A DNA stretch of 64,000 bases from Rhodosorus marinus CCMP1338 (GCA_029953675.1 JAMWBK010000001.1:2356001-2420000), one strand, 5' to 3'; shown: positions 8,500-60,496, counted from the stretch's first letter. Numbers and translations are program-made. The notes: a model not told the origin generated them from the letters alone.

Positions 8500-8676
8500 C
8501 CCCGAAGACCATATAGCAGCATGCTTGCCGAGGCGCGGCATCGGCGCTTCGGTTTGCATGTTTCTATCCCGACTTCCTAGTTCCAGTCCACGCCTTTCAT
8601 AGCGCTTCAGGCTCTGCTAGTAAAAGCCAGCGAATCGTAGCGCTTCAGGCTATGCTAATAAAGCCAGTAAAAGCCA
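8500..8676 (+). mobile_element. B-like 3' fragment with a 36-nt second 3' end nested in its tail
   Basis: SMLAEARHRRFGLH plus 3'UTR; AGTAAAAGCCA at 8619-8629 and 8666-8676 flanks a second gtagcgcttcaggctatgctaataaagcc. Confidence 0.85.
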
Positions 8677-11148: not shown

Positions 11149-11165
11149 CAATTATGGACTTTACT

Positions 11166-12376
11166 GGACTTTACTAGCATAGCCTGAAGCGCTACGCAAG
11201 GCGTGAAGATGAACTAATAACTAGGGAGGGAAGCATGCAACCCCAGGCGCCGATGGCGCGCCTCGGAAAGCATGTCGCTGGAATATCGCCAAAGGGAGAC
11301 ACTTAAACGCCTCAAGAGCGCCAAATAGTCAGTAGGACGCTCAGCAAACATTTCCGCAACCACTCTAAACCCGACTTATCCACGTGACCAAAGCTTTCCA
11401 CAATGAATGGCTGGAACCGGTGAGAGCGACCCTCAGCGCAAGGCAGACTGGCCATGCTCTCAGCATACCGTCGTTCCTTAACTCTTCGAAGGGCTGAAGC
11501 CGCGGCGCCCCGGCGGCGGGCGGCTGCGGTGAGGTGGGCGCTGGCCACGGGGCAGGTAATCGCAAGGTCCACATATGTTGAGCGTCTGGCAGCAGCGTCG
11601 GAGACGAGGAGATCGGCTATACAACGGGGCGGTGCAGAGTCCGAGATTGATTTGGGCAGTTCCGACTCAACCTCAACCGTATGCCCTATCCGAGTCAATA
11701 ACTCGCTGAGGATGTACTTGAGGCGAGTGTGACGCCTCGTACGGAGACCTCTCAACAGTCCGCAGGAACCCAGGAAGTGGTAGCCACGAGCGTCAATCCG
11801 GCTCTCACATCCCTGACAGAAAGACGGCCGATTAGAGTGCCACGGAGCCTGTGGGAAACCGAGATAGATCCGTGCGGAACGGAACTGGAAAGCATCGAGA
11901 CGATGACTCAATGACGACGGTAGAGTGGTTAACCACAAGTGCGAGAGGTGGCCTCCCATGCCGCGGAGACGAGCGGCAGTGGTAGGCGGCGTGAGAGGAG
12001 AATTGAGCATGACTGTGTGAGGGGCACTGTGTTGGCCCCAGGTGATGCTATGTTGAATCACATCAGTGCGGGAGCTCCACAATCGGCTCAAACCCGGGTA
12101 GTCTGCAACAGGTTACCCGGGGCTAGCCTCTCCGTCATCGGCAAGAACGCGGTCGAGGGGAGAATTCTCAATCGCTTTAGCTCGTCCCCATAACAGCTCC
12201 CTCCAGGAACGAAAGCGGGACCTATTTGAGTCCGGCACGGCGTTGCACCTCCTGAACGCGTGTTGAAGACCATCATAAATTGTCAAAAGCGGGGGCGGCA
12301 GGGTCACTGGATCCTCGTTGGTCAAAGCTCGAGCCAAGAGGCAGGCACTTCGCATCTGGAAGGTCACCAACGTTCG
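11166..12376 (-). mobile_element. Family B 5'-truncated copy (~1.2 kb) inserted in the tail of a tiny older copy
   Basis: Near-identical to 42787-44002; 7-bp TSD AGTAAAG (plus strand CTTTACT 11159-11165 and 12377-12383); the host 3' end lies at 12377-12415. Confidence 0.95.
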
Positions 12377-12619
12377 CTTTACTAGCATATCCTGAAGCGC
12401 TACGCAAGGCGTAATTATTGCTCGAGTGATAATGTATTGCTACAGTGACCTTCGAAGAATGAAGAGGAACTGTTCCTTCATCTGGAACAGAGACTCCTTT
12501 CTTTGCAGATACGGTCCCCTTGACCCCTTGCACGAGCTTCTTTAGCAAAATCATCTCCATTTCCGAGGAGCAATATCCTTACGAAAATCAACAGTTGCTT
12601 GCAAGGAAAGAAGAAGAAG

Positions 12620-12742
12620 AGTTTCTAGCAACATTATGCGCAGAGGCGCGCCGCCGTTGCCTGGGCTTACATGCTCTTCTCCTTAGCCCCTAGTTCCCTT
12701 TTACGTCTTGCGTAGCGCATCAGGCTATGTTAGTAAAACCAC
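12620..12742 (+). mobile_element. Old B-like 3' fragment (tail AGTAAAACC)
   Basis: AEARRRCLGLHA plus 3'UTR stem variant gtcttgcgtagcgcatcaggc. Confidence 0.8.
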
Positions 12743-12870
12743 TTTGGCGATATTCCAGCGACATGCTTTCCGAGGCGCGCCATCGGCGCCTGGGGTTGCA
12801 TACTTCCCTCCCTAGTTATTAGTTCATCTTCACGCCTTGCGTAGCGCTTCAGGCTATGCTAGTAAAGTCC
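12743..12870 (+). mobile_element. Family B 128-bp 3' fragment inserted in the preceding tail
   Basis: 11-bp TSD AGTAAAACCAC at 12732-12742 and 12871-12881. Confidence 0.95.
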
Positions 12871-13249
12871 AGTAAAACCACCATCACCACCACCAGCTAT
12901 TGATATGCCACATTGAAGACATACCAATACTGAATGAATGTTCACGTCAATAACGGTGATCTTGATTTGAGAGTACACCCCGCCATCTTCATTTCTTCCT
13001 CATCGACACGCCAGTGGCATTTGCCATGTAGCATTGTCGTATCTGTTCCCCAGGAACTGTCACGGAGTGGCTGCTCTGGTTGAGCGGGAAATTCGTGAGA
13101 GTTGTTAGAAGAAGATATTCCGGGGGCGATGATGTTTATTCGGCGCATGCCTGGTAATTGCGCTCGTCTGGGGATACGAAAAGAACTAGCAGGCGTCAGG
13201 TTGTATAGAAAATGCGTGACATTGTATCTAGATAGATGATTGTGTCTGC

Positions 13250-27270: not shown

Positions 27271-27368
27271 TTTTCTATAGCCCGCGAATTCGTGTTTCGG
27301 CTTTAGATCATCGCCTGGTGCCTTTGGTCATTTGATTGTTTCGGACTTTACTCTCCTTAGTAAAACTT

Positions 27369-30149: not shown

Positions 30150-30617
30150 CGCATTGCGGAGCGCTTCTGGATCTGCTAGTAAAAACCGCGGCTCCCGACA
30201 GGGACTTAATTCGTGCCCAGCTCGCTCTACCGTTGCGCTTAGGGGGATTTGGTGTCGCAGATCGGGGGCTCATCTGCTCGCCTGCGGCGGTCGTCTCCTG
30301 CGCAACCGCGCTCCGTACCTTGGTGACTTTCCGGATACAAAGTGCCTGCCTTTTGGCTCGAGCACTGACTAGCGAGGACCCAGTGACCCTTTCGCCCCAG
30401 CTTTTGACGATCTATGATGGTCTACACCAGGCGTTCCGGAAGTGCAACGCCGTGCCGGACGAGAATCGATCCCGTTTTCGCTCCTGGCGGGAACTGCTAT
30501 GGGGACGAACTGAGGCGATTCATGACTCACCCATTGACAGAGTTCTTGCCGATGAGAGAGAAGCTAGCCCTGGGTCACCTGTTGCAGATTACCCAGGTCT
30601 GAGCCGATTGTGGAGTG
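30150..30617 (+). mobile_element. B-like internal fragment, inverted relative to the adjacent 3' end
   Basis: Diverged match to 42650-43090 (APDRDLIRAQLALPLRLGGFG...YPGLSRLWS). Confidence 0.85.
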
Positions 30618-33589: not shown

Positions 33590-34210
33590 AAATACATCCT
33601 GAGCGAATACTTGACAAGGTATTCGCTCAGGCGTAGTGTTGCGCTGCAGTAGGCAGCTGCCCAGTAAAGCTTACGGTTACTCGGTCGAGGTGGAATCGGC
33701 ACTGCCTACACCCAAGTCCAATAAAGCCCTAATAAACCACTACCCAGATCGGTCAATGCTCGTGGATCAGGCAATGTTAGTTCCGGCAGGTGAGATGGAT
33801 TTTGGAACGACGGTATGCTGAGAGCATGGCCAATCTGCCCTACGCCGAGGGTCGCTCCCACCGGTTCCAGCCTTTCATTGTGGAAAGCTTTGGTCATGTG
33901 GATAAGTCGGGTTTAGAGTGGTTGCGGAAATGTTTCGCTGAGCATCCTATTGAGTACTTGGCGCTTTTACGGCGTTTGAGTGCCGCCCTGTGGCGATATT
34001 CTAGCAGCATGCTTGCCGAGGCGCGCCATCGGCGCCTGCGTTTGCACGCTTCCCTCCCTAGTTCTTAGTTCCTTTTCACGCCTTGCGTAGCGCTTCAGGC
34101 TATGCTAATAAGCCCAGTAAAGGCCAACACAGTGCCGCTCACGCAATCTTGCTCAACTCTCCCTCACACCGCCTACCACCGCCGCTCGGCTTCGCGGCAT
34201 GGGAGGCCAG
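33590..34210 (+). mobile_element. D-subfamily 3' fragment with an internal tail-like insert (~33707-33737), followed head-to-tail by a second internal fragment (34117-34210)
   Basis: AEGRSHRFQPFIVESFG...LHASLPSS plus tail; after AGTAAAGGCC the sequence resumes aacacagtgccgctcacgcaatcttgctcaac. Confidence 0.85.
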
Positions 34211-35594: not shown

Positions 35595-36537
35595 GTTTAC
35601 TTCTTAACTGGTGGTGGCTTGACTACTTCCTTCCTGTTCAGCTTCCTTCCGATTCCTTATCGCTACACTTCTCGCTGAGAAACAAGTGATAGTCGATGCC
35701 TGCTACTCGACCACCATTTGCACTGACTTAGCTCTTCCAACACTTTATATACTCTTTCACGTAGTCTTCGAGTCTGAAGCCAGCAGCTGGAAAAGCCAAG
35801 ATTGCTCGTGTATAGCCCATTCTTTGGGGGCGCTAGTGGAACAACGAAGTTTCATCAGCAATCACGGAAAATATTCGAAAGTGAGCTATTAGATACTTTG
35901 GCTACATTTCCTGTGACTTTGGATCGCAAAAAACGTCGATTCGAGCCGCCCCTGGCACAGCACTCATCCAACTGACCCCCATCGTACTGACCAGGTCTGT
36001 TCCCGTTGAAACCTCTCCTCTGGGGGGGCTGTGGAACACACAAAGTTCATCAGTAATCGAGAAAAGAATTGCGAGTTAGCTCTTGTACGCTCTGGATACA
36101 TAAATTGTAACTTTGGGATTGAAATAGAAGCCCGAGCCAATGATCGCTCGTACAACAATCGTTGAAGCGCGACTCTCACCGGGTAACAACAGCTAGGATC
36201 GTTTGTTGGATGCACTGTACAACCGACAGCGTTGCGGACCAAATAATAATCTATCGATCGTTTCAAGTTCATCGATCTAATTACCTGGCTAGAGCGAAAG
36301 AATGTCGGGAAAAATTGAGTGCGGAACTGTCAGGAAATTGTGGAACAGAGAAGTTACATAATTAATTGCAATAGAGACTCCGAATTTGTCCGTTAGATAC
36401 CGCAAGTTGGATCTCTTGCAACCTGGGTTTGGCATAAAAGTGGTATAAAATCCCCGAATTCACAACATTTACTGAATATACTGCTAGCGGTGTGTCGACG
36501 GGTCCGACGTTTAAGGGCAGAAAAGAGCTTAAAACTG

Positions 36538-36584
36538 GACTTTACTGGACTTTAGCCTGAAGTTTTTTTTTTTTTTTTTTTTTC
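36538..36584 (-). mobile_element. B-type tail micro-insertion preceded by A21
   Basis: Minus strand G-A21-cttcaggctaaagtccagtaaagtc; TSD AGAGC(T/A)TAAAACTG at 36524-36537 and 36585-36598. Confidence 0.8.
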
Positions 36585-36938
36585 AGAGCATAAAACTGAC
36601 GGGCTCGAGAGAAAGACAGACTGACAGTTGCGAGTTTCATCGTTCCAGTCAGGAAGCTACTCCCTGAGTGGCTCCCTGTGACACTCACACTCCAAAAATA
36701 GCTCACTGGTCACAAAACTCATCTTGAAATTCGTATCAAACTAATCTCTATCTCACCTCACCACATCCGATGACCGCATCAGCCATCTCTCGGCTACCCC
36801 AACGGTCTTCGGATTTCCACCCATCCGCCGCGACTCGGTAAGCGACTCGGGTGGTGACTCAACGTGGCACCATAACTCACCCGTAAAAGAAAATTGGACA
36901 CTACGTAATTTTCTGGAATATAAGATTAACTTATACAA

Positions 36939-37404
36939 CGAGCGAATGGTTTAATCGGAGGCTGAAAAAAAAAACCCCGAGGAGAAAAAAAGACTAAGCG
37001 CGGCGAAGTACTCGCGCCTCCAACATCGAACGAATGGTTTAATCGGAGGCTGAAAAAAAAACCCCGAGGGGAAAAAAAGACTAAGCGCGGCGAAGTACTC
37101 GCGCCTCCAACATCAAAGCGGCATTCATGCGCCACAGCAGGAAACTTAAGCGGGTAAACAACGATTGAAGACGGTCAGGGCGTTCGCGGAACAACTCCCG
37201 AAGCCAGCGAGAACCAACAGAGTCCATGAACAAAGCGGCATTCATGCGCCACAGCAGGAAACTTAAGCGGGTAAACAACGATTGAAGACGGTTAGGGCGT
37301 TCGCGGAACAACTCCCGAAGCCAGCGAGAACCAACAGAGTCCATGAACCCAAAGCACTCAATGATCAGGGGTACCAAGCGATGTGCTAGTGCCGAAGCAC
37401 GAAT
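36939..37404 (-). mobile_element. Family A 3' fragment containing a second nested family A 3' fragment (37027-37230)
   Basis: Outer TSD ACTTATACAA at 36929-36938 and 37405-37414; removing 37027-37230 restores contiguous gccgctttg|atgttggagg. Confidence 0.92.
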
Positions 37405-37744
37405 ACTTATACAAGGGGTTCTTCTCCAATGTACTTCCTAAATACATTCATTCGATCGCACAGGTTCCGGATCACATCCAAATCGAACCAATCAGTGGTG
37501 ATGGTGGGGTGGTTACGTTGTGGCCGCTGCAGTAGGTAGCTCTCGGATAAAAACTACGGGGTTACGTTAGGCTGCGGTGAGATTAGCTGCGCAGTGGTAG
37601 GTAGCTGCCAAAGAAGGGCTACCGGGTTGTGAACCAGTCAGTATCTCAGCTCTCCTCGCTGATCACCCGTTTGAAGTCCTGATATGACGTATCGCGAAAC
37701 ACACATTCCAAAATTGAGCCCTCATATGCTCCGTTGGTACTACT

Positions 37745-38886: not shown

Positions 38887-38946
38887 CGGGTTGTACCCGG
38901 AAGCCGTGGTACCCCGAACCCGTTGTACCCCGAACCCGTTGTACCC
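38887..38946 (+). repeat. 16-bp minisatellite (left part), unit ~GCCGTTGTACCCCGAA
   Basis: Four degenerate units; same unit as 44013-44198. Confidence 0.8.
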
Positions 38947-39078
38947 TTTGATCTTTGCGCACGGGCAATGTCTCTCAAGTGAGGTTCTACCGATGAGCGA
39001 CTATTGCTGGTTGAAAACTATTCCAACCGCGCCCGTTCACTACATGTGACCGTGGCAATTTTTGGCTACAACTCTCCC

Positions 39079-39199
39079 CCAGCGACATGCTTTCCGAGGC
39101 GCGCCATCGGCGCCTGGGGTTGCATGCTTCCCTCCCTAGTTATTAGTTCATCTTCACGCCTTGCGTAGCGCTTCAGGCTATGCTAGTAAAGTCCAGTTG
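39079..39199 (+). mobile_element. Family B 3' fragment that hosts the full-length copy
   Basis: Matches 43886-44002; its tail supplies the left TSD. Confidence 0.95.
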
Positions 39200-39442
39200 A
39201 GTTGTCGAGGATTGGGGTTTTGTTTCTTTTTCGGTCGCGAGCGTGTTCGTTTACGGGAAACGCTTCCTCTGGTACGCCTTCCCCTCGATTTTCCGCGGGG
39301 CGTCGTTTGCATTTGCAACTACTTCTGTCTTCCGGGTGGGTGAGTTGCGGGGCCTTTCCTATTTGGGTTGGGTTTGGTCGATTATTCTCTCGGTGCGGTT
39401 TCATATTAGTGGTGCAACGTTTCCTTGGCGGATTCCCTCAGG

Positions 39443-40852
39443 ATGGTAGGGATATCTCCGCACTCGACGGAGCCTCCTCCCAAGGAGGCACTGCCAGGTG
39501 GGGGACTCCGTGTTCGCCTCAGCTGCGGCACGTTTTCTTCCGAGGTTGACTTGGAAGGCGCTTCTGGCACCCAGGCGCGTTCACTTATCTCCGCTGTCAC
39601 CAGCCTGATCACGGCTGCGAGTGATCGTGGAGTGCTCCCTCAGCTCACCCAGAAGCTAGGTGGGCTGGAATCGGGATTGCTGGCCAGGTCAAATTCAAAT
39701 TCGGACGAGAATTTGAATTGCCCCAGAGTGGCAGCGTTGGCTGAAGGCAGTCAACATCCGGTCAATCAACATGAACCTGTCCCGGGACAGGCGAGGGCTG
39801 TTGCTTCTGCGCGGGACAGTACGACGTTGGGGAGCGGCAGGCCGGGCCAAAACGCGCTTCAGCGCTCGGGGACTCGAGGCAATGGTGGTGGTGACTGTGC
39901 GGCAACCGGTGTGGAGGAGACTGCAGCTGTGGACTTCCCTCTCTTGGACCAGCCCTCAGGTGGTCACCAGCTCCCGGCTACTTCGGGGGCACGTGGTGGC
40001 CGCAACGGGGGCGCTTCGTACGCATCAGTCTTGCGGAAGGGCACCACTGCCACACGTACGGCGGCTATGCTCCGTTTCATACCATCTCGCGAGCCTCAGG
40101 ATGGACCTGTGGAGACCACTCTCCAATTTCTGTGGGTGCGAAATGTCCGGCCCCAGACTACACGAGGACAGGTTCCGTCTATGCGAGACTTCCGGGACAC
40201 TTTTGCGGAATCGTTAGGGTGCAGCAGGGGTGATTTCTTCTTCGCAAACTATGAGGGCCGCGATGTGCTGTTTTTGGTCTCCGCAACCGCCGCCAAGTAC
40301 CTGGAGGCCTTGCTGGCGAAGCCTACCGAGCAGTGGCCTGAGAGCGCCCGGTGGCTGCGCTGCAACCCGCAGGTGGTTTTGCACTTCGATTTTGACCGTT
40401 TCTCGGGCAATTTCCTGTCTCCGGGAGAAACGGCAGGGCTCTCTGAGCATGAGAGCAGCGTGAAGGCGGCAGCGATCCATTGGCTACGGATTCAGCGCCT
40501 TGAGAGGATCTTGTTGGCGCGGTTCCGGTCGGGCCCTCGTCACCTGCGCATGGCGGTTTCCAGTTTCTTCGATCTGGAGAGGCGACTTGTGCTGACTTCG
40601 CGCTACAAGACAGAGCTGCAGCGGGTGGGGATTTTGGAGGGCTCTGCTTCCAGCACTACTTCCAGCGAGAGTGGTGAGGCAGGGGAGCAGACTGAGGGCA
40701 TGGCGGTGGAGGACGCCCAGGTTACTTTGCTGAAGCCCGCGGGATCCGTTCCGCGAGCCTCGCGGAGTGGGAGGCTCACGACTTTGGTGCGGATAGGAGG
40801 TAAGAGAGCGAGGACCGACTCCCCCGGGTCTAAGGGGGAGAAGCACGATTAG
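39443..40852 (+). CDS. Family B ORF1 (469 aa), intact
   Basis: ATG 39443 (MVGISPH); homologous to A and D ORF1; basic C-terminal GGKRART. Confidence 0.88.
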   Translation: MVGISPHSTEPPPKEALPGGGLRVRLSCGTFSSEVDLEGASGTQARSLISAVTSLITAASDRGVLPQLTQKLGGLESGLLARSNSNSDENLNCPRVAALAEGSQHPVNQHEPVPGQARAVASARDSTTLGSGRPGQNALQRSGTRGNGGGDCAATGVEETAAVDFPLLDQPSGGHQLPATSGARGGRNGGASYASVLRKGTTATRTAAMLRFIPSREPQDGPVETTLQFLWVRNVRPQTTRGQVPSMRDFRDTFAESLGCSRGDFFFANYEGRDVLFLVSATAAKYLEALLAKPTEQWPESARWLRCNPQVVLHFDFDRFSGNFLSPGETAGLSEHESSVKAAAIHWLRIQRLERILLARFRSGPRHLRMAVSSFFDLERRLVLTSRYKTELQRVGILEGSASSTTSSESGEAGEQTEGMAVEDAQVTLLKPAGSVPRASRSGRLTTLVRIGGKRARTDSPGSKGEKHD

Positions 40853-40883
40853 CGCTCCAGGCACGGCTGCGAGGTCGCAGCCT

Positions 40884-43800
40884 ATGGATCTACAGTCTTA
40901 TGTCCTGAAGGAGGGCGGAGACTGGGGCATTTGGCGTACGCGTTTTCGGAGTTGGCTCCGGCGGTGGATTTCTTTGGAAGGAGGCTCGCTTCCCCTCCGT
41001 GGGGGCATTCCCCCAGTCGTCCTTCCTCGTGGAGACCTTCTGGTAGCTGGAACCATTCTCGATTTCATCTTCACGAGCCTGGCTCGCAACATTCGGGACA
41101 CAGTCATTTGGGTTTTTCTGGGGTCATGCCGCGCATGATTCTGGCCCCCATTCACACATCGGAGCGCAGATGGCGAGTACGAGACCGACTGGCCCTGTTC
41201 TTGAAGGGAGACTTCGAAGTACTACAGCGCAGCTATTTGGCGTCGTCAGCACCATCCGCCCGTCGGACTCGGCATGGCACAGTGTCGCCCGTGCCAGCTC
41301 GAGTACAGAAATTGGTAGCAGTGGGCGATTTAAGTCGAGCGGCGCGGGTTTTGGAGGGCCAGGCGCCTGTCCTCCCCTACGATGATAGTCTCGCCCAGAC
41401 GGTGTCGTCTTTGTTCCCTGAGTCCGACGTGGATTTGTCCCCTGAATTCGAGGTATTCTTGGACCGTCCGGAGTTGGCCAGGTTTCGCATCGATCTGACG
41501 CTCAGTGAGTCTGACCTGGAGGATTTGCTTCGTACCTCGCGTCGGGGACGCTGTCCTGGACCCTCCGGACTAAGAACAGAGCTATTGCAGGCCCTGAGCC
41601 AGCCTGGCCAGAGCGCGCTTCTGAGGATCCTTAACAAGTTGTTCCAGGGCGTATCGGGTGCGTCCGCGCCATGGGAACATCTCCGGCAGGCACAGCTTTG
41701 CTTGCTCACGAAACCTGACCACCAGCCGGCCCACCCGCGTCTCCGGCCGATCGGGATGGTGGAGAGCCTACGGAAGTTAGCCGGGAGGTGGCTATGCCAG
41801 CGCCTTCGCCAGCGCGTCACAGCTTTTATGGCGCCCTTGCAAGTAGGGGTGGGATTTTCTGGGGGTTGCGAACTGATCACCCATGGGATCGAGCTAGAAC
41901 GCGCCAGTAGGCCGGAGTGGGGAGTCTTGGTGGTTGATTTCCGGAACGCATTCAACAGCGTGTCGCGGACGCATGCGCTAGAGGTGCTCCGACGTGTGTT
42001 TCCGGAGGCGTGGCCGTTTCTATCGGGTATTTACGGAGGGGAGAGCCTCCCCTACTTGACAACGGAGGGCACTGTTTTTCAAGCATATACTGGCGTCCAA
42101 CAAGGCGACCCTTGCGGACCTCTTCTTCATGCCTGTGCCCTACAGCTCGTACTTTTACGTCTTTCGACTGAGGTCTCGGATCTTCGAATCTGCGCGTACC
42201 ACGATGACGTAACATTGCTGGGCACCCCTGACACCCTGGCTAGGGGACTGACCGCGATCGAAGCGATTGCACGTCGCGTCGGTTTGACTGTGGAAACAGA
42301 AAAATGTCGCTTTCTCCCCCCCGAGGGACGTGTCGCTGAACTCTCTGCCACCCACTCTGCGACTAATCAGCGAACGTGAAGGGTTCGAACACCACGGCGT
42401 CGGATTGGGGACTGACAACTTTGTCCAAGCATCCTGCGAGCGAGTTTTGGCACGGCACAAGCAACTCACCGACGCCATTGAGCACCTACCCGACAGCATG
42501 CTGCAATCGGCGTGCTTGCTTTCCCGCTTTTGTGCCGGTCCCAGACTCAACTACTGGTTGCGCAGCCTGCCTCCAGCTTGGGGCGAGTGGATCGCGGCTA
42601 AAGCCGACGAAATGACCCTGCAACACTGGGGAACGCTCTTGGATGAGCCCCTCGATCTTGAAGCTGCTCCCGACAGGGACTTTATTCGTGCACAGATCGC
42701 TCTACCGTTGCGATTAGGGGATTCGGCGTCGCAGACCGTGGGCTGGTATGCTCGCCAGCGGCGGTTGCCTCCTGGGCTACCGCGCTGCGAACGTTGGTGA
42801 CCTTCCGGATGCGAAGTGCCTGCCTCTTGGCTCGAGCTTTGACCAACGAGGATCCAGTGACCCTGCCGCCCCCGCTTTTGACAATTTATGATGGTCTTCA
42901 ACACGCGTTCAGGAGGTGCAACGCCGTGCCGGACGCAAATCGGTCCCGCTTTCGTTCCTGGAGGGAGCTGTTATGGGGACGAGCTGAAGCGATTGAGGAT
43001 TGTCCCCTCGACCGAGTTCTTGCCGATGACGGAGAGGCTAGCCCCGGGTCCCCTGTTGCAGACTACCCGGGTTTGAGCCGATTGTGGAGCTCCCGCACTG
43101 ATGTGATTCAACATAGCCTCACCTGGGGCCAACACAGTGCCGCTCACACAGTCATGCTCAATTCTCCTCTCACGCCACCTACCACTGCCGCTCGTCTCCG
43201 CGGCATGGGAGGCCACCTCTCGCACTTGTGGTTAACCACTCTACCGTCGTCATTGAGTCATCGTCTCGATGCTTTCCAGTTCCGTTCTGCCGCACGCATC
43301 TATCTCGGTTTGCCACAGGCTCCGTGGCACTCTAATCGGCCGTCTTTCTGTCAGGGATGTGAGAGCCGGATTGACGCTTGTGGCTACCACTTCCTGGGTT
43401 CCTGCGGACTGTTGCGAGGTCTCCGTACGAGGCGTCACACTCGCCTCAAGTACATCCTCAGCGAATTTTTGACTCGGATAGGGCATACGGTTGAGGTTGA
43501 GTCGGAACTGCCCAGATCCATCTCGGACTCTGCACCGCCCCGTTGTATAGCCGATCTCCTCGTCTCCGACGCTGCTGCCAGACGCTCAACATATGTGGAC
43601 CTTGCGATTACCTGCCCCGTGGCCAGCGCCCACCTCACCGCAGCCGCCCGCCGCCGGGGGGCCGCGGCTTCAGCCCTTCGAAGAGTTAAGGAACGACGGT
43701 ATGCTGAGAGCATGGCCAGTCTGCCTTGCGCTGAGGGTCGCTCTCACCGGTTCCAGCCATTCATTGTGGAAAGCTTTGGTCACGTCGATAAGTCGGGTTT

Positions 43801-43954
43801 AGAGTGGTTGCGGAAATGTTTTGCTGAGCATCCTACTGAATATTTGGCGCTCTTGAGGCGTTTAAGTGTCTCCCTTTGGCGATATTCCAGCGACATGCTT
43901 TCCGAGGCGCGCCATCGGCGCCTGGGGTTGCATGCTTCCCTCCCTAGTTATTAG
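40884..43954 (+). pseudogene. Family B ORF2: RT + CCHC + RLE, with single-base frameshifts at ~41120, ~42315 and ~42720 (all in homopolymer runs)
   Basis: MDLQSY... N-terminus homologous to A ORF2; GRCPGPSG, LRPIG, VDFRNAFN, GVQQGDPCGP, AYHDDV, CQGC..H....C, RTRRH, CIADL..YVDLA..KERRY, FQPFIVESFG. Confidence 0.92.
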
Positions 43955-44012
43955 TTCATCTTCACGCCTTGCGTAGCGCTTCAGGCTATGCTAGTAAAGT
44001 CCAGTAAAGTCC

Positions 44013-44198
44013 AGTTGTACCCCGAACCCGTTGTACCTCGAAGCCATTGTACCCCCGAAGCCGTTATGCCCCGAAGTCGTTGTACCTCGAAGCCAGTGTA
44101 CCCCCGAAGCCGTTGTGCCCCGAAGTCGTTGTACCCCCGACGCCATTGTACCCCCGACGCCATTGTACCCCCGACGCCATTGTACCCCCGACAGCCGT
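44013..44198 (+). repeat. 16-17 bp minisatellite (~11 units, GCCRTTGTACCCC(C)GAM)
   Basis: Directly visible tandem units, homogenised toward gccattgtacccccgac at the right end. Confidence 0.93.
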
Positions 44199-44357
44199 TG
44201 GAGACTCCAAAGGCGGTTTCGGATATTAAATTACATTATATTTAAACTGTCCAACAACAAGCAGTACAATATATTAAAAAACCTAGAAATGGTTTGAAAT
44301 TTTTTTGCGGAACAAGAGTGACAGGAAAAGTGGGACACCCCCTCACTGCTGTAGTTA

Positions 44358-44385: not shown

Positions 44386-44475
44386 CACGTCCCAAGAAGT
44401 CACAGTTATTTTTTCATTAACTTCTGTTTGGTAGATTGACCATTTCTATTTGATTAGGCTTTACTGGGCTTTACT

Positions 44476-47450
44476 GGACTGGACTTTACTGGACTTTACT
44501 GGACTTTACTAGCATAGCCTGAAGCGCTACGCAAGGCGGGAAGATGAACTAATAACTAGGGAGGGAAGCATGCAACCCCAGGCGCCGATGGCGCGCCTCG
44601 GAAAGCATGTCGCTGGAATATCGCCAAAGGGAGACATTTAAACGCCTCAAGAGCGCCAAATATTCAGTAGGATGCTCAGCAAAACATTTCCGCAACCACT
44701 CTAAACCCGACTTATCGACGTGACCAAAGCTTTCCACAATGAATGGCTGGAACCGGTGAGAGCGACCCTCAGCGCAAGGCAGACTGGCCATGCTCTCAGC
44801 ATACCGTCGTTCCTTAACTCTTCGAAGGGCTGAAGCCGCGGCCCCCCGGCGGCGGGCGGCTGCGGTGAGGTGGGCGCTGGCCACGGGGCAGATAATCGCA
44901 AGGTCCACATATGTTGAGCGTCTGGCAGCAGCGTCGGAGACAAGGAGATCGGCTATACAACGGGGCGGTGCAGAGTCCGAGATTGATCTGGGCAGTTCCG
45001 ACTCAACCTCAACCGTATGCCCTATCCGAGTCAAAAATTCGCTGAGGATGTACTTGAGGCGAGTGTGACGCCTCGTATGGAGACCTCTCAACAGTCCGCA
45101 GGAACCCAGGAAGTGGTAGCCACAAACGTCAATCCGGCTCTCACATCCCTGACAGAAAGACGGCCGATTAGAGTGCCACGGAGCCTGTGGCAAACCGAGA
45201 TAGATCCGTGCGGCAGAACGGAACTGGAAAGCATCGAGACGATGACTCAATGACGACGGTAGAGTGGTTAACCACAAGTGCGAGAGGTGGCCTCCCATGC
45301 CGCGGAGACGAGCGGGAGTGGTAGGCGGCGTGAGAGGAGAATTGAGCATGACTGTGTGAGTGGCACTGTGTTGGCCCCAGGTGAGGCTATGTTGAATCAC
45401 ATCAGTGCGGGAGCTACACAATCGGCTCAAACCCGGGTAGTCTGCAATAGGTAACCCGGGGCTAGCCTCTCCGTCATCGGCAAGAACTCGGTCGAGGGGA
45501 GAATCCTCAAACGCTTCAGCTCGTCCCCATAACAGCTCCCTCCAGGAACGAAAGCCGGACCGATTTGCGTCCGGCACGGCGTTGCACCTTCTGAACGCGT
45601 GTTGAAGACCATTATAAATTGTCAAAAGCGGGGGCGGCAGGGTCACTGGATCCTCGTTGGTCAAAGCTCGAGCCAAGAGGCAGGCACTTCGCATCTGGAA
45701 GGTCACCAACGTTCGCAGCGCGGTAACCCAGGAGGCAACCGCCGCTGGCGAGCATACCAGCCCACGGTCTGCGACGCCGAACCCCCCTAATAGCAACGGT
45801 AGAGCGATCTGTGCACGAATCAAGTCCCTGTCGGGAGCAGCTTCAAGATCGAGGGGCTCATCCAAGAGCGTTCCCCAGTGTTGCAGGGTCATCTCGTCGG
45901 CTTTAGCCGCGATCCACGAGCCCCGAGCTGGAGGCAGGCTGCGCAACCAGTAGTTGAGTCTGGAACCGGCACAAAAGCGGGAAAGCAAGCACGCCGATTG
46001 CAGCATGCTGTCGGGTAGGTGCTCAATGGCGTCGGTGAGTTGCTTGTGCCGTGCCAAAACTCGCTCGCAGGATGCTTGGACAAAGTTGTCAGTCCCCAAT
46101 CCGACGCCGTGGTGTTCGAACCCTTCACGTTCGCTGATTAGTCGCAGAGTGGGTGGCAGAGAGGCCAGCGACACGTCCCTCGGGGGGAGAAAGCGACATT
46201 TTTCTGTTTCCACAGTTAAACCGACGCGACGTGCAATCGCTTCGATCTCGGTCAGCCCCCTAGCCAGGGTGGCTGGGGTGCCCAGCAATGTTACGTCATC
46301 GTGGTACGCGCAGATTCGAAGATCCGAGACCTCAGTCGAAAGACGTAAAAGTACGAGCTGTAGGGCACAGGCATGAGGAAGAGGTCCGCAAGGGTCGCCT
46401 TGTTGGACGCCAGTATGTGCTTGAAAAACAGTGCCCTCCGTTGTCAAGTAGGGGAGGCTCTCCCCTCCGTAAATACCCGATAGAAACGGCCACGCCTCCG
46501 GAAACACACGTCAGAGCACCTCTAGCGCATGCGTCCGCGACACGCTGTTGAATGCGTTCCGGAAATCAACCACCAAGACTCCCCACTCCGGCCTACTGGC
46601 GCGTTCTAGCTCGATCCCATGGGTGATCAGTTCGCAACCCCCAGAAAATCCCACCCCTACTTTCAAGGGCGCCATAAAAGCTGTGATTCGCTGGCGAAGG
46701 CGCTGGCATAGCCACCTCCCGGCTAACTTCCGTAGGCTCTCCACCATCCCGATCGGCCGGAGACGGGGTGGGTCGGCTGGTGGTCAGGTTTTGTGGGCAA
46801 GCAAAGCTGGGCCTGCCGGAGATGTTCCCATGGCGCAGACGCACCCGATACGCCCTGGAACAACTTGTTAAGGATCCTCAGAAGCGCGCTCTGGCCAGGC
46901 TGGCTCAGGGCCTGCAATAGCTCTGTTCTTAGTCCGGAGGGTCCGGGACAGCGTCCCCGACGCGAGGTACGAAGCAAATCCTCCAGGTCAGACTCACTGA
47001 GCGTCAGATCGATGCGAAACCTGGCCAACTCCGGACGGTCCAAGAATACCTCGAATTCAGGGGACAAGTCCACGTCGGACTCAGGGAACAAAGACGACAC
47101 CGTCTGGGCGAGACTATCATCGTAGGGGAGGACAGGCGCCTGGCCCTCCAAAACCCGGGCCGCTCGACTTAAATCGCCCACTGCTGCCAATTTCTGTACT
47201 CGAGCCGGCACGGGCGACACTGTGCCATGCCGAGTCCGACGGGCGGATGGTGCTGACGACGCCAAATAGCTGCGCTGTAGTACTTCGAAGTCTCCCTTCA
47301 AGAACAGGGCCAGTGGGTCTCGTACTCGCCATCTGCGCTCCGATGTGTGAATGGGGACCAGAATCAGGTGCGGCATGACCCCAAGAAAAACCCAAATGAC
47401 TGTGTCCCGAATGTTACGAGCCCGGCTCGTGAAGATGAAATCGAGAATGG
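44476..47450 (-). mobile_element. Family B 5'-truncated copy 'C' (~3 kb, most of ORF2)
   Basis: Near-identical to 41054-44002; frameshift at ~46765; CGA>TGA at ~46511; tail (AGTAAAGTCC)3 AGTCC followed by D-type AGTAAAGCCC units at 44457-44475. Confidence 0.96.
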
Positions 47451-50400
47451 CCTAAAGCGCTACGCAAGCCGTGAAAAGAAACTAAGAACTGGACTTTACT
47501 AGCCAAGAACTAGGTAGGGAAGCGTGCAAACCCAGGCGCCGATGGCGCGCCTCGGCAAGTATACTGCTCGAATATCGCCAGAGAGAGACACTTAAACGCC
47601 GCAAAAGTTCCAAGTGTTCAACAGGATGCTCAGTGAAACATTTCCGCAACCACTCCAAACCCGCCTTCTCCAGGTGACCAAAGCTTTCCACAATGAAAGG
47701 CTGGAACCGGTGGGAGCGACCCTCAGCGCGAGGCAGACTGGCCATACTCTCAGCATACCGTCGTTCCTTCACGCGGCGAAGCCCCGAAGCAGCTGCTCCC
47801 CGCCGGCGGGCGGCAGCCGTCAGATGGGCGCTTGCCACAGGGCATGTAATCGCGAGGTCAACATATGCTGAGCGTCTGGCGGCAGCATCGGAGACGAGGA
47901 GATCTGCGATACAGCGGGGCGGTGCCCTATCCGAGATCGATCTGGGTAGTTCCGATTCCACCTCAACCGTATGCCCTACCCGAGTCAAACATTCGCTGAG
48001 AATGTACTTGAAGCGAGTGTGACGCCTCGTACGAATAACCCAACAGTCCGCATGAACCTAAGAAGTGGTAACCACAAGCATCGATCCGACTCTCACATCC
48101 CTGACAGAAAGACGGCCGATTAGACTGCCACGGAACTTGTGGCAAGCCCAGGTAACGTGCGGCAGAGCGAAACTGGAAGGCATCGAGACGGTGACCCAGT
48201 GATGACGGCGGGGTCGATAACCACAAATGTGATAGATGGCCTCCCATGCCGCGGAGGCGAGCGGCGGTGGTAGGCGGTGTGAGGGTAGACTTGAGCAAGA
48301 TTGCGTGAGCGTCACTGTGTTGGCCCCAGGTGAGGCTCTTTTGAATCACGTCAGTGCGCGAGCTCCACAATCGGTTCAGACCCGGGTAATCGGCAACCGG
48401 TGACGCGGGGCTAGCTTCCCCCTCGTCAGCGAGTACTCTGTCGATGGGAGAGTCCTCGATCGCCTCGGTACGTCCCCATAACAGCCCTCTCCAGGAGCGG
48501 AACTTGGATCGATTCTCGTCCGGCACGGCGTTTCACTTACTGAACGCCTGTTGCAGAGCATCATAGATACTCAAAAGCGGTGGCGGAAGGGTCACGAGGT
48601 CTTCGATAGTCAGTGCTCTAGCCAAAGGCAAGCACTTCGCATCCGAGAACTCACCAAGATGCGAAGCGCGCTAGCCCAGGAGGCGACCGCCGCAGCCGAG
48701 CATACGAGTCCACGGTCGGCCACTCCAAATCCGCCTAATCGTAAAGGTAGGGCAATCTGGCCACGAATTAGGTCCCTGTCAGGAGCCTATTCCACATCCA
48801 GGGGTTCATCCATGCTCATGGTGTGCTAAAACTCGTTCGCAAGAGTCTTGGACAAAGTTGTCACTCCCCAAAGCGACGCCATGGTGAGCCCCGCAAGTTC
48901 ACCAAAGGCTCGGAGACTAGGTGGCAGGGAGCCCCTCGAAACTACACGCGGGCCGAGAAAACGGCATTTTTCGGGTTCCAATTTTAGACCTACTCCACGT
49001 GCTATCGCTTCCATCTGGGTCAATCCCCGAGCCCAGTGCTCAGGGGTGCCCAGCAACGTCACGTCGTCATGGTAAGCACAGATGCGAAGCTCCGGCACCT
49101 CAGCCGCCAGTCGCTGGAGCACGAGCTGCAAGGCACAGGCGTGAAGTACAGGCCCACAAGGATCACCCTGTTGAACGCCAGTACGTGCTGCAAAAACAGA
49201 GCCCTGCGTTGTCAAGTAAGGGAGGCTCCCCCTCCGTAAATACCGGATAGGAACAGCCACGCCTCCGGGAATACCCTTCGAATCACCTCCAAAGCATGCG
49301 TCCGCGAGACGATGTTGAACGCGTTGCGGAAGTCAACCACCAAAACGCCCCAATCCGGCCTACTGGCTCGCTCGAGCTCGATCGCATTAGTCACCAGTTC
49401 GCAGCCCCCGGAAAATCCCACCCCTACCTGCCAAGGCGCCATAAAAGCGGTGACTCGCTGGCGAAGGCGCTGGCATAGCCACCGCCCGGCGAGCTTCCGT
49501 AGACTCTCGACCATGCCGATCGGCCGGAGACGCGGGTGTGCCGGATCGTGGTCGGGTTTCGTTAGCAAGCGAAGCTGTGCCCGTCGCAGATGGTCCCAAG
49601 GGGCAGACGCACCCCCTGCACCCTGGAACAGCGTATTCAGAATCTTCACCAGTGCGCTGGCCAGACCGAAGAGCCCGGTGGCGAGGCTTGCTCAAGGCCT
49701 ACAGTAATTCCGTTCGTAGCCCAGAGGGTCCAGGGCAGCGTCCGCACCGGAAAGTCCGGAGCAAATCCTCCAGATCAGACTCACGGAGCGTCAGGTCGAT
49801 GCGGAACCTGGCCAACTCTGGACGGTCTAAAAATGCCTCGAATTCGGGGAGCAAGTCCACGTCAGACGAGGGGAACAACGCCGACACGGTCTGGTCGAGG
49901 CTATCGTTGTAGGGGGAGTACAGGTACCTGACCTCCAAGACCCGTGCCGCGCGGCTCAGGTCGCCAACCGCCACCAATTTCTGCCCTCGAGTCGTCCTAG
50001 GCGAGGCTGTCCCAGCACGAGTCCTCCGGCCGGATGCCTCGGATGACGCCAAGTAGCTCTGCTGCAACACCTCAAATTCCCCCTTCAGGAACATGGCCAG
50101 TCGTTCTCGGACGCCGCATCTGCGCTCCGATGTGTGAGTGGGTGCCAGAATCAGGCGCGGCATGACCCCAAAAATTCCGACATAGCGACGTCCAGTTGAT
50201 TACGCGCCAGACTCTGTAAAATAAAATCCAGGATTGTCCCAGCCATGGAGAGCTCTCCTCGAGGGAGGACAAGAGGCGGAATCCTTCCCCAGAGGGGTAG
50301 AGAGCCTCCTTCCAAATAAATCCATCGCCAGAGCCAACTCCGCAGGCGCGTGCGCCAGATGCCCCAGTCTCCGCCCTCCTTGAGGACATAAGCCTGCAGG

Positions 50401-52065
50401 TCCATTGGCTGCGACCTCGCAGCCGTGGCCGGGGAGCTAATCGTGCTTCTCCCCCTAAGACCCGGGGGAGTCGGTCCTCGCGCGCTTGCCTCCTAACCTT
50501 ACCAAACTGGTCAACCGGCCACTCCGCGGGGCCCGCGGGATGGCTCCCCCGGGATTCAACAAAGTAATAGGGGCGTTCTCGACCGAAATGCCCTCCGGCT
50601 CCCCTTCCTCGCCACTCGCACCGGAAGTGGTGCTTGAAGCGAATACTCCCAAACGCCGTAGCTCTTCCTTGTGACTTGAGGTCAGCACAAGGTGCCTCTC
50701 CCGGTCAAAAAAGGTAGAGGCGGCTGCGCGCAGATGGCGTGGACCCGACGCAAAACGCTCCAAAAGTATCCGCTCCATGCGATGAATGCGAAGCCAGTGG
50801 ACAGCTGCAGCTTTCACACTAGTGTCGTGCTCAGATAGCCCTGCTGTTTCTCCGGGAGAGAGGAAAGTGCCCGAAAAACGGTCGAACCCGAAATGCAATA
50901 CGACCTGGGGTTGAGAACGCAACCAGCAGGCGCTCTCAGGCCACTGCTCGGTAGGCTTCTCCAGCAGGGCCTGCAGGTACGTGGCCGCGGTCGACGTGAC
51001 CACAAAGAGGACATCGCGACCCTCATAGTTTGCGAAAAAAATGAAGTCTTCGCGGCTCACCCCAAAGACTCCGCAAAAATATCCCGAAAATCTCGCATGG
51101 ACGGGACCTGGCCCCGTGTAGTCTGTGGCCGGACGTTGCGCACCCAGAGGAATTGCAAAGTAGTCGCCGTAGGTCTGCCCTGCTGCTCGCGAGAGGGCAA
51201 AAATCTTAGCATAGCCGCCGTCCGTGCGGCTGCGGTACCCTTCCCCAAAACTGAGACGCAAGACGGGGCCCCCTTGGGACCACCTCGTGCCCCCGCCTTG
51301 GCCTGGAGCTGTCGCCCACCTGAGGGCTGGCCCATGACTGGAAAGTCCGCTTCAGCTGTGGGAACATTCGAAGGATTAGGCAGCTCTGCGCACCTCTCCG
51401 AAGAGGCCCCAGCCGCGGAACCACCTTTGTCACCTTCAGGTCCCGGAGCTGCCCTAGCCTGTCCCGGGACAGGTTGTTGATTGACCTGGGGAAATTTACT
51501 GTCTTCCGCCAGCTTGGCCACATGGCTGGAATTCAAATTCTCACCCGAATTTGAATTTTCCCTCGCCAGGAGACCCGATCCCAGCCCCCCTAGCTTCTGG
51601 GTGAGCTGAGGAATGACACCTCGATCGTCCGCGGCCGTAATCAGGCTTGTTATAGCAGAGAGCAGGGCACGCATTTGCGGACCAGAGGCGCCCTATAACT
51701 CCACCTGCGTGGAGAAAGGGCCCGCGCGAAGGGACACTCTGTGTCCGCCCTCAGTAGACACCTCCGCCCGCGGGATCTCCGGACCCTCAGGAGTGGAGCG
51801 CGGAGGGACCCCGGCCATCACGGAAGAGTGTGTTGAACCGGAGTGTCACGAAGGAACCCGACCAAAAAATCCCGCGCAAACCAGCGCCTCAGACCGAAAA
51901 CTCCGGATCGAACACCCAAGAGGGGGAGAATCCCCGATAACCAACCACGAAACCCGAAAAAGCGTGGGATAAGACAGCGAGAGGATGCGCCTGCAACGAG
52001 GAACACTCTCGGACCCGAACACGACTCCAATCGCAACCGAAAACCAACTCCAACCCTCCCCCTAA
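47451..52065 (-). mobile_element. Full-length diverged B-subfamily copy 'D' (decayed)
   Basis: ORF1 from ATG 51818 (MAGVPPR) and ORF2 from 50405 (MDLQAY), colinear with B; many frameshifts, stops and an internal deletion near 48815; 5' end approximate. Confidence 0.93.
47491..47504 (-). mobile_element. 14-nt B tail micro-insertion inside copy D's 3' end
   Basis: GGCTAGTAAAGTCC flanked by a 7-bp TSD (plus strand AAGAACT 47484-47490 and 47505-47511); absent from the equivalent 3' end at 34055-34080. Confidence 0.8.
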
Positions 52066-54548
52066 GCTTGAGTCATACATTGGTTTGAAAGTACGAGAGA
52101 ACTGATAGGGATCTGGATCGATGAGTAAGCGTCGCGGGCTCAACCCCCGTCCGCGAAAGCCAACTCATCAACTACAGTGACCAGTAGTTTCCCGTCTCAT
52201 GAAATGAGCGTCTTTTATGGAGAAGCCTCTCGTTTTAGGCCACTAAGTGCAAGAAAATCGTTTTTGAAGAAGTGCATGGGTTGTCTCGAGGAAACGACAA
52301 GTCGCTCTCCTCGATGTCGCTTTTCGCGCTAAGCGGTAAACGATCACTCCATGAGCTGCTTTAGAGTTCATACACATTTTTGGTAGTGACATTGAGTTTT
52401 CTCCCTGTCTGTTCGAATCTAGCCACTACTGTACTTCCAATCGACTAACAGAACCGATAAACAGCCCTACTGGACTGAAGCGCGTAGAGGCCTTTTTAGT
52501 GAGTTCCACTACCCTGAAGCTGAAGGTTATTTTCTGATAGAGAGACGCAAATCCGGTTAGGGACGTTTCTAATTGACGTGGTGGCCCGGAGCTCTTTCGC
52601 TTGGGAGCGTCCCTGTCGCCCAAACTTCTGAGCTTCTCTCAACCCGGTTGCTCCATATGGTGGTTTTACTACATGTCGTTGCTCCCAAGACTACATGCTT
52701 CTCCAAGTGGGAGCACAAGAGCCCATTGGAATCAGATGGCTCATTCAGATCCTGATACGATTTGAAAATTGTCAGCCGGGAGAACCTGGCTCCTCGCGTG
52801 ACTCGCCCCTTAACAACAAGATAAAGGAGCCTGCTGAGAGTGGGGGTGATTGTCGGAAATGGCGTTATCTATCAATAATCCAGAAAATTCTTGATTTCTA
52901 ATCCAGAGAGCTACTTTCTTTCTCTTGTTAGGTACTCGTATTGAGCTACTAGGCCTCCGCCATCGCCCTCCAGGGCTGTCACTGAAGTCAGTGAACGCCC
53001 AGAGAGGCAGCCCTGGCAATTTCCCTGTGCTCATTGAGCTAAATTAAAAAAAAAAGGACGTACTGATTACACTAAAATCGATATGGACGAAATAATTTGA
53101 AAGATATATTTGCTCCCTTTTTCCACTGCCCTAATTCAAAGTCTCCTGTTTTTCCCAATAGTTCTCTAAAAGTTCAATTATTAAGTATACAGCGAACGGC
53201 AACATACAATTAACCCATTGTCATCAAAGTATGTCGTGCTCCAATTAAAATTCTTTTAATGTATATATATAAATAATTTTTCTCCTACGGTCCAGAATGC
53301 TTTTGAATACATGGAAGAGTATCTAGAGCTTGCCCTCCATAAAATGAAAAATTTATGCTCTAAATATGGACCAAAACTTAACTTTATTCAAGTTGTTTCT
53401 ATCTAAGACAATGCTGTCCTTTTAACAACTGTCAACTAGTCGCATGCTCTATTTTGAGAACAATTCCGCCCTCTAAATATTGGATACAAACTTAATCATT
53501 CAGTCAATCAAAATCTACGAAATACTTGTCCAGATGTGTCCTATATTTTTCGGGATAGCCCCAAAGGGCGGTAGGGGCTCAATACTATGTTTTTTGTTGA
53601 ATTTGGAGCGAACGTGCCCTGTAGGAGTTAACCGTCTATTCTGGTGGGAGAAGCAATCCAAACTGCTTCGTCATGGAGTTCGCATGATGATGCGTGTATG
53701 CCTCGGCAAGGATAGAGGAGGACGCGAGAGTAAGCTTTGGAGAGCTGATAGTGCTTCCACTGAACGTTTCAGTAGGGTCTCCTATTCTGCTCTGAAAGCG
53801 CTTCCCTTCGTTAACAAACTTGAGGACTAGAATTCAATGCTTTTCCGTTAGTCAAAAGAGGTGACGTCGCGTTTACGACTTGATGCTGACTGATTCGGTT
53901 TTCGCGTGGCGAGTTGGCATTTGGAGGTTCCCCTAGTCAGTTGAGTGTCAGGTGGTAGAGAAGTAGCGCGTTATGAGGATGCGGCCATTCAAGAACCTGT
54001 TTCAAGCAGTAGTTATTTCCTTGTCGTCTTTTGCTGCGTTCGAAATTAAAACTTGCGCTTTATAAACGAATGCCGAATAAGACAGGGCAAGCTATGCTTT
54101 TTCGATGTCCTTTTTCAGTTCCGATCTCATTTTAATTCGAAGGTGGCTACAAAGGGATAGCCTCTCGTGCACCTGCTCATCTACCTGAATGTTGCGTTCT
54201 TCATTGTAACCAATGTTTTTAAAACATGCTTCCAAGACCCAACAGGTCCCTCTCCGTATCTCTCCATTGTAAGCATGGCGAACCCTAGGGCTGCCTGCTA
54301 CTCGGGCAATCCAAAGCAGTCTCATGTACGCATACAGCTGTATTCAACCTGATACTGTTTGCAGAAGGGGTATACTCTGTGTGTGCGAAAACCGATCCAT
54401 TGGTATCTATCTCAAATTTCAGTGCGATTTCATCCCTCCTTGATCTGGACGACCGCCATGACAAGAGGGCGCAAGTAAAGTTTAACTTGTTTCCTCCAAG
54501 CCTGCTCCGCTACCTTGTTGACGTGCACCAGATAGAGATTGAGAACAC

Positions 54549-59505: not shown

Positions 59506-59739
59506 TTCTGCAGTTGTTGACATCCGGATGTTTTCCTTTCACCTCCAACTAAACAAATTCATTCATTCCCCTATAAAAGAATGGTTGGTTTTTCTATACT
59601 AAATAATAGCAACTGTTGGGATGGGGAAAATTGTTGTTGACATTCCTTTGCAATCGTCGATTAGCTACGAGCGGACTCTGTATAATATTCAAGACTGAGT
59701 AGCAAGGAGTAGAGATAGAATGAATTGCTTACTCGAAGA

Positions 59740-60250: not shown

Positions 60251-60496
60251 CGAAGTTCGCAATATAACAGGTTCAAGATCCGCAAGATAGAAGTGTAAAA
60301 AGGAAGAGAGATATTCGTAAAAAGGCAAGAGTTGAAACTCTTGTTGGAAGGGTGAGTTCCTAAGTGAATAGTGAATATTGAGCGCCGATTAAGGGGTCGC
60401 CCTTTGGCGATGTTCTACCATCATTCTACAAAGCATGCGAGCACGGGCCGAGGTACGCCACCGCCGCCTGATTGAGTTTTTGCTTGGGCTGCGGTA

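Follow-up and report, generated by a model that had tools for sequence, protein, structure and literature searches.

How a retrotransposon comes to lie, time after time, directly behind the tail of another copy of itself is the question raised by a 64-kb stretch of the genome of the red alga Rhodosorus marinus CCMP1338 (JAMWBK010000001.1:2356001-2420000), which was analysed in its full length and is referred to as the window. The element concerned, family B, is predicted to be a retrotransposon of the kind that lacks long terminal repeats (non-LTR), with two open reading frames (ORFs) and a restriction-like endonuclease (RLE), and about 20 copies were found in the window, most of them 5'-truncated and with target-site duplications (TSDs) of variable length. 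A first-pass annotation of this DNA had proposed that family B targets its own 3' repeat tail. The analysis has revealed that head-to-tail self-nesting in this family is real: seven of approximately 21 copies in the window begin directly behind the tail of another family B copy, all in the same orientation, with new copies lying preferentially in older copies of their own family. Target-primed reverse transcription (TPRT) with a preference for existing tails, together with template jumping by the reverse transcriptase (RT), would build these chains, and this explanation as a whole is given a probability of about 0.7.

Insertion into older tails and target preference

The 3' untranslated region (UTR) of family B ends in GCTTCAGGCTATGCT and is followed by a tail unit of 9-10 nt that differs between subfamilies. 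The ten young copies all carry the unit AGTAAAGTCC, whereas copies of the D1/X type have AGTAAAACCAC, those of the B1/H0 type AGTAAAA(G/A)CC and some others AATAA(A)GCC. Because the first tail unit co-varies with the 3' UTR subfamily, the tails appear to be templated and inherited with the element, and the family B RNA would end in a subfamily-specific unit such as AGUAAAGUCC.

Four insertions are heterotypic, with a tail unit of another, older subfamily located 3' of the inserted copy's own tail. These units are AGTAAAAGCCA at 8666, AGTAAAACCAC at 12871, AGTAAAGCCC AGTAAAGCC at 44475-44457 and, in the R. marinus genome contig L007, CTAGTAAAAACCA at 3524. The same unit is repeated before the 5' end of the inserted copy in three of the four (8619/8666, 12732/12871 and L007 2959/3524), and the duplication in L007 (CTAGTAAAAACCA at 2959-2971 and again at 3524-3536) measures 11-13 bp. 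In the fourth (44457-44475) the old tail was displaced, not duplicated: copy N sits between the body and the tail of the old copy O, and its 5' junction falls within the last 7 nt of O, where the heptamer CCATTCT, common to both, represents either microhomology or a 6-nt target deletion. Since a jump between RNA templates cannot place a unit of another subfamily 3' of the new tail, all four cases would need reverse transcription primed at a pre-existing tail, even if the enzyme is allowed to jump. Two of the pairs contain a copy of the youngest subfamily, and in both it is the older copy that lies upstream (78% versus 99% and 84% versus 98% identity to the full-length copy M), as sequential insertion predicts. 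The geometry that the first-pass annotation had listed at further sites was recovered at 8619-8676 and 12732-12881, for copy C behind AGTAAA and for copy N with the displaced tail of O (Table 1). The related claim that each insertion leaves a new tail was supported as well, and mosaic tails with units of different subfamilies were present (30029-29967, 21092-21120 and 44510-44457).

Short tandem tails could mispair, and the frame breaks of copy M coincide with homopolymer differences typical of long-read error, pointing to an imperfect assembly; the chains might on these grounds be artefacts of assembly, or secondary results of exchange between tails through gene conversion or unequal recombination. 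This origin is hardly credible, because exact 11-13-bp duplications around complete 5'-truncated copies of another subfamily are the signature of insertion and not of crossover, and because the same junction types were found in the independent genome contig L007 and in two transcriptome assemblies. As the same geometry occurs in L007 and tail-to-copy junctions occur in the transcript contigs L001 and L008/L009, an assembly artefact is unlikely. The transcriptome contigs span such junctions at positions 1-40 of L001 and 3596-3640 of L008, from which it follows that chained copies are co-transcribed or read through.

Most elements with an RLE have repeats as their specific targets, among them rDNA, snRNA genes, microsatellites and telomeres (PMC4640811), and in family B tails and targets are alike. 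On this basis the tails could also be taken for target DNA, if the element were directed to some repeat of the host such as a minisatellite or telomere-like (AGTAAAGTCC)n. This seems very improbable, given that free-standing arrays of the unit are absent from the 64 kb, where every tandem run lies at a family B 3' end, which argues against a host repeat as the true target. The co-variation of the first unit with the 3' UTR subfamily also stands against it, as do the verified TSDs that fall in another satellite and in unique DNA of unrelated sequence. No telomere-like repeat was found within the window.

Tail-like units cover approximately 4e-4 of strand positions. Compared with this chance expectation, three clear-cut tail hits in 19 readable insertions give P = 7e-8, and all seven tail hits in 21 insertions give P = 3e-19. 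Tails were also targeted more than the other AGTAAA hexamers of the window (7/20 versus 1/29, P = 0.005).

Outside tails, six TSDs were verified: AGTTCTT, CAGTTTTA ((C)AGTTTTA), ACT(A/G)TAGC, CAATCAAATA, ATAATT and GTTGTACCC. The first four of them are tail-like. Five of the six start with A if an optional leading C is skipped in two (P = 0.004), while a start with AGT or ACT, earlier said to mark most other duplications of the family, was confirmed in three of the six but not in ATAATT, CAATCAAATA or GTTGTACCC. No TSD was found in a search around copy K. In addition, all four AATCAAAT octamers of the window lie directly 3' of family B tails (21066, 21121, 27337 on the minus strand and 44455 on the minus strand), two of them being the duplication of one 19-bp copy, and this octamer is possibly a second preferred target. 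On account of the starts of the non-tail TSDs and these octamers at tails, the preferred site looks like the start of the tail unit (A-R-T-M-A-A). The proposed preference for AGTAAA-like sites is supported in that insertions favour earlier tails and A-R-T-M-A-A sites as starting points.

Several points weigh against a preference of this kind. The sample comprises about 21 events, drawn from a single 64-kb window and a 27-kb locus, and tails no longer differ significantly from the remaining AGTAAA sites (P = 0.29) when the three clear-cut cases alone are considered. Four of the seven junctions in the window (those of C, H, J2 and M) are uninformative about mechanism, two being homotypic and two being without a 3' end. 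The non-tail TSDs range from 6 to 10 bp, indicating a variable nick stagger, and several targets (GTTGTACCC, ATAATT) scarcely resemble a tail. Finally, the junction in front of copy M could have arisen in another way, as described in the following section.

Some further observations concern tails without element bodies. The 12-mer AGTAAAACCACC, which is also contained in the D1/D2 tail, stands alone at three unrelated sites (24938-24949, 52659-52670 and 61824-61835, all on the minus strand), and these are probably tail-only insertions of one family B subfamily. Immediately 5' of copy F, at 27343-27368 (plus strand), a young-type tail unit in inverted orientation (GGACTTTACT) is accompanied by TAGTAAAAC in forward orientation, and no element body is present. 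An origin of the inverted unit by twin priming was rejected, as the inverted piece is tail and not upstream element sequence. The end of copy H (30615) and the start of copy F (27369) correspond to the same element position (3890 +/-1); copy F lies 2.8 kb upstream of copy H, and the two differ in divergence.

Template switching and the U4 locus

Copy M is about 4.8 kb long and is bracketed by the 15-bp repeat AGTAAAGTCCAGTTG, which the first-pass annotation had read as its TSD, composed of one tail unit of an earlier copy and five further nucleotides. The repeat is present at both ends as described, and the earlier copy is copy L, a family B fragment of 119 bp that consists of the end of the 3' UTR and a single tail unit. 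Copy L is in turn fused to the 3' end of a full-length retrocopy of the U4 small nuclear RNA (snRNA), which is preceded by four extra bases (TTTG, 38947-38950). The block formed by U4, the fragment and M splits a 16-17-bp satellite, with GTTGTACCC on either side (38938-38946 and 44014-44022), and when the flanks are joined, with 44023 following 38946, the satellite continues in phase. This U4 is not regarded as a genuine gene, since it lies inside the satellite, has no promoter context and is separated by 4 nt from the duplication whose removal makes the array whole again. The arrangement is that of the chimeras formed between snRNAs and long interspersed nuclear elements (LINEs), namely a complete snRNA, a 5'-truncated LINE 3' end in the same orientation and one TSD around both. 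Copy M is inserted behind the fusion of U4 and L, inside the same GTTGTACCC duplication.

A second chimera (36598-36530, minus strand) joins TGCTCTG-A21 to a 9-nt family B end plus tail, and its A21 piece is probably the 3' end of a polyadenylated RNA. In contig L007 (5329-5077, minus strand), a family B tail (AATAAAGCC AG) is followed by a 5'-truncated copy of family A, a second retrotransposon of the window, and in transcript contigs L008/L009 by a truncated family B copy, in both cases without a duplication. The chimeras of family B with U4, with A21 and with family A show that the family B RT switches templates in vivo. Chains arise both by tail-primed insertion and by template jumps; the mechanism put forward in the first-pass annotation was therefore correct about tail targeting and incomplete in not considering template switching, which makes some of the junctions.

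The junction between L and M could itself stem from a template jump, in the one event that also produced the U4 fusion, because the tails of L and M are identical and L is fused to the U4 retrocopy. The length of the duplication around M may also be revised. The old full-length copy (5' end at about 52060) begins with GGTTGGAGTTGG where M has AGTTGAGTTG, and the GTTG may belong to the element, which would then start with GTTGAGTTG and be flanked by a true duplication of 11 bp, AGTAAAGTCCA; the alternative is a start with AGTTGTCG and a TSD of 15 bp. The other two tail duplications of the window are of 11 bp. When the 5' end of M was aligned to the old copy, both started with a doubled (A/G)GTTG, so the terminus is not fixed by this alignment.

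It could be argued from these findings that every head-to-tail junction is a single event in which the RT jumped between family B RNAs, with no preference for genomic tails. Template switching is directly visible in the U4 and A21 chimeras, the junctions of family B with family A and with itself that lack a TSD fit such jumps, and the L-M junction, which adjoins the U4 fusion, would fit a double jump comparable to the tripartite chimera of Magnaporthe (PMC2104539) and to U6/L1 chimeras (PMC4476161). Jumping as the sole source of the chains is nevertheless unlikely, considering that in the four heterotypic cases a unit of the upstream, other-subfamily tail lies 3' of the downstream copy's own tail, and in three of them this unit is identical to the one found at the 5' junction. 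Likewise, the youngest subfamily is never found upstream of an older copy, and at the junction of N with O the tail of O is absent.

Coding capacity of family B and other features of the window

The coordinates of the features are collected in Table 1. A Pfam search with ORF1 gave no match. ORF2 matched RVT_1 (E=1.8e-16) as its sole Pfam domain, and its closest solved structures were R2 proteins (4e-11), followed by L1 ORF2p. In copy M, ORF2 is divided into four frame pieces (40884-41138, 40931-42379, 42330-42800 and 42794-43954) by single-base homopolymer indels relative to copy N (at 41118, 42316 and 42716), which may be real defects or sequencing errors. The C-terminus common to M and N (CQGC-X9-H-X4-C-X9-RHT...E...IAD-X14-D) is compatible with the CCHC plus restriction-like endonuclease (REL) pattern quoted for SLACS, CRE and MoTeR (PMC12857005), with deviations at two positions of the RLE pattern (RHT for RHD/N and IAD for (R/K)PD). 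The Pfam scan of ORF2 revealed no apurinic/apyrimidinic endonuclease (APE), and no LTRs were found among the approximately 20 copies. The RT, the CCHC and RLE motifs and the lack of APE and LTRs agree with the RLE-bearing grade of non-LTR elements (R2/CRE/NeSL/R4/HERO). The strict specificity of the CRE clade for spliced-leader genes or telomere repeats was not observed, since family B was verified to have inserted into its own tails, into unique DNA and into a 16-bp satellite.

The C-terminal piece of ORF2 matched one protein from the MMETSP data of Rhodosorus and one NCBI protein of Rhodosorus marinus; a protein search with the 652-aa ORF of copy N gave no matches. All homologues retrieved were proteins without a name. 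A literature search on transposable elements of Rhodosorus yielded nothing relevant. A distant relative, L002, was uninformative at 35% identity. A search of metagenome contigs with the 19-mer TAGCGCTTCAGGCTATGCT yielded three chance matches and no additional copies. The Rfam scan for 5' ribozymes and small RNAs detected only U4 in the window and none in related loci; a match to MIR827 at 21243-21349 was dismissed as being below threshold.

Family A, which also has an RT and an RLE-like domain, shares 97.8-99.5% identity with its copies in contig JAMWBK010000013.1 of R. marinus. Together with the protein matches of ORF2, this assigns the window to R. marinus, a unicellular red alga, or to a species very close to it. 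At 36935-37406 (minus strand) its 3' end is arranged as P-Q-Q-R-R, with repeats of 117 and 87 bp flanked by TTGTATAAG, which reflects either a nested insertion or two duplications; the extra R unit, from A position 4852, recurs in L007 at 26198-26298. A host gene, an intronless amino-acid transporter (Pfam Aa_trans, E=3e-42), was located at 4826-6319 on the minus strand.

Table 1. Position of family B copies, chimeras and other features in the window.
Feature	Position	Strand	Details
Copy M, full-length family B body	39200..43992	+	5' terminus uncertain by 4-5 nt (39196-39200)
Left 15-bp repeat	39185..39199	+	tail unit AGTAAAGTCC of copy L followed by A and GTTG
M's own templated tail unit, AGTAAAGTCC	43993..44002	+	
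Right 15-bp repeat	44003..44017	+	bases 44014-44022 double as right copy of outer GTTGTACCC duplication
ORF1 of M	39425..40852	+	475 aa
ORF2 of M	40884..43954	+	RT, CCHC motif, restriction-like endonuclease
Left copy of outer 9-bp duplication, GTTGTACCC	38938..38946	+	last satellite unit before inserted block
U4 snRNA retrocopy, full-length	38951..39076	+	Rfam RF00015, 93.5 bits, E=1e-19, model positions 1-138 of 138
Copy L, 5'-truncated last ~106 nt of family B 3' UTR	39079..39184	+	100% identical to 3' end of M
Satellite of 16-17 bp, (GTTGTACCCCGAAGCC)n	44014..44200	+	original target of U4/B chimera; upstream part 38890-38946
Poly(A)-RNA/B chimera: TGCTCTG, A21, CTTCAGGCT AAAGTCC AGTAAAGTCC	36530..36598	-	flanked by CAGTTTTA
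36-bp family B copy, tail AATAAAGCC, within AGTAAAAGCC tail of older copy B1	8619..8676	+	11-bp TSD AGTAAAAGCCA, 8619-8629 / 8666-8676
Young copy D2 (128 bp, 99% identical to M), tail AGTAAAGTCC, within tail of old copy D1	12732..12881	+	11-bp TSD AGTAAAACCAC, 12732-12742 / 12871-12881
Copy C (12377-11156) behind AGTAAA of 29-bp copy C0 (12412-12384)	11150..12418	-	outer ATAATT, 12418-12413 / 11155-11150
Copy N, 5'-truncated at element position ~1854	44476..47450	-	own tail (AGTAAAGTCC)3 AGTCC
Tail of old copy O, AGTAAAGCCC AGTAAAGCC, displaced 3' of N	44457..44475	-	
Old full-length copy O/P	47444..52060	-	76-84% identical to M; 5' end near 52060
14-bp micro-insertion GGCT+AGTAAAGTCC in 3' UTR of O	47484..47511	-	TSD AGTTCTT
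Copy H0 3' end, tail AGTAAAAACC, then 5'-truncated copy H	30163..30615	+	junction 30187/30188
Copy J1, tail AATAAGCCC AGTAAAGGCC, then fragment J2	33804..34209	+	junction 34125/34126
Family A, second related retrotransposon with RT and RLE-like domain	14400-19344	+	ATTC(G/A)TTC-type tail
Family A 3' fragments	3524-3835, 8086-8265, 13635-13721, 22216-22468, 36944-37406, 59718-60282, 62473-62763		

Proposed mechanism and comparison with related elements

The junctions, duplications, subfamily-specific tails and chimeras described above are observed in the DNA, and a mechanism can be proposed that would account for them. Insertion would proceed by TPRT, starting with a nick in the bottom strand that, read on the top strand, immediately precedes an A-R-T-(M-A-A)-like site on its 5' side. 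The freed ...ACT-3' end would pair with the start of the tail unit in the RNA and prime cDNA synthesis, and the top strand would be cut 6-15 bp downstream, or 11-13 bp in the case of tail targets. The tails of earlier copies, matching the RNA tail best, would be the most used targets. A new copy would come to lie behind the old body and one tail unit, with the old unit duplicated after the new tail, and each insertion would leave a fresh tail, giving chains in one orientation and mosaic, lengthening tails. The same RT would also jump to the 3' end of another RNA (U4 snRNA, a polyadenylated RNA or another element), adding further head-to-tail junctions in a single event. The order of the nicks is inferred, and either endonuclease specificity or base pairing may select the site.

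In all four heterotypic cases the first nick is placed at the boundary between body and tail, or 2 nt before it. It is conceivable, although only tentatively proposed, that the ORF2 protein recognises the DNA copy of its own junction between 3' UTR end and tail as a specific site, so that family B would be a self-specific element building its own landing pads. Transcripts that read through the junctions (L001, L008) might then supply further rounds of insertion.

The first-pass annotation had named no described element whose preferred target is its own tail, and in this respect it did not hold, as Cnl1 self-insertion and the nested clusters of Zepp (PMC3446292) precede the present case. Cnl1 of Cryptococcus, a CRE-type, RLE-bearing non-LTR element, is reported to insert preferentially into itself and to form tandem nested arrays (PMC9942834, PMC7175516, PMC12857005), with a sequence specificity stated as undefined (PMC12810828). 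Both elements bear an RLE and are self-nesting; however, the arrays of Cnl1 lie in subtelomeric regions and are associated with TSDs similar to the telomere repeat, whereas family B also occurs at dispersed sites with no telomere link seen in the window. Moreover, the family B target has been resolved to the nucleotide as its own 9-10-nt tail unit, and the host is a red alga.

Zepp, an L1-like LINE of Chlorella and Coccomyxa, has an endonuclease of a different class from that of family B. It shares the nested clusters of one and the same element (PMC3446292) but is poly(A)-tailed and forms one cluster per chromosome. More widely, RLE elements commonly target repeats, including microsatellites and transposons (PMC4640811). 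In RLE and R1-clade elements specific for microsatellites, such as Dong, Togen, some HERO families and Waldo/Mino, as in family B, the target resembles the 3' end of the element and insertion regenerates it. Their microsatellite targets exist in the host independently of the element, whereas the family B repeat was found only as the tails of earlier copies.

Alu elements insert in sense orientation into the A-rich linker of older Alus (PMC2836564), and L1/Alu and family B have in common that a primer complementary to the RNA tail favours tail-like targets. L1/Alu differ in their APE endonuclease and homopolymer tail, whereas family B combines an RLE with a complex 10-nt unit, which makes old and new tails distinguishable. 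UnaL2 is an APE-type LINE of the L2 clade, and own-tail targeting is not part of its description. Family B resembles UnaL2 and the other 'stringent' LINEs in that reverse transcription starts in a short tandem 3' repeat, where slippage alters the number of units (PMC1636434). Chimeras of snRNAs and LINEs have been explained by template switching of the RT (PMC4476161, PMC11838501, PMC2104539). The U4 case is like the U6/L1 chimeras in its full-length snRNA joined head-to-tail with a 5'-truncated LINE 3' end within one flanking TSD, and differs from them in the use of U4, in the RT of an RLE-type element and in the red algal host.

Self-nesting elements have therefore already been described. 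Family B contributes the nucleotide resolution, the subfamily-specific tail unit, the snRNA chimera of an RLE-type element and the red algal host, and with these it refines accepted ideas without introducing a principle of its own. Family B provides a clean, nucleotide-resolved example of a retrotransposon that makes its own preferred target, in which the 9-10-nt tails that differ between subfamilies separate old from new, as would be impossible with poly(A) or microsatellite tails. The in vivo formation of an snRNA chimera by an RLE-type RT shows that what is known from U6/L1 also occurs with a different class of endonuclease and in red algae. If the ORF2 protein does recognise its own junction, self-nesting would gain a nucleotide-level specificity of the kind that is undefined in Cnl1. 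The preference of family B for its own tails helps to explain how nested arrays of the Cnl1 or Zepp type grow, and how repeats come to be clustered away from genes.

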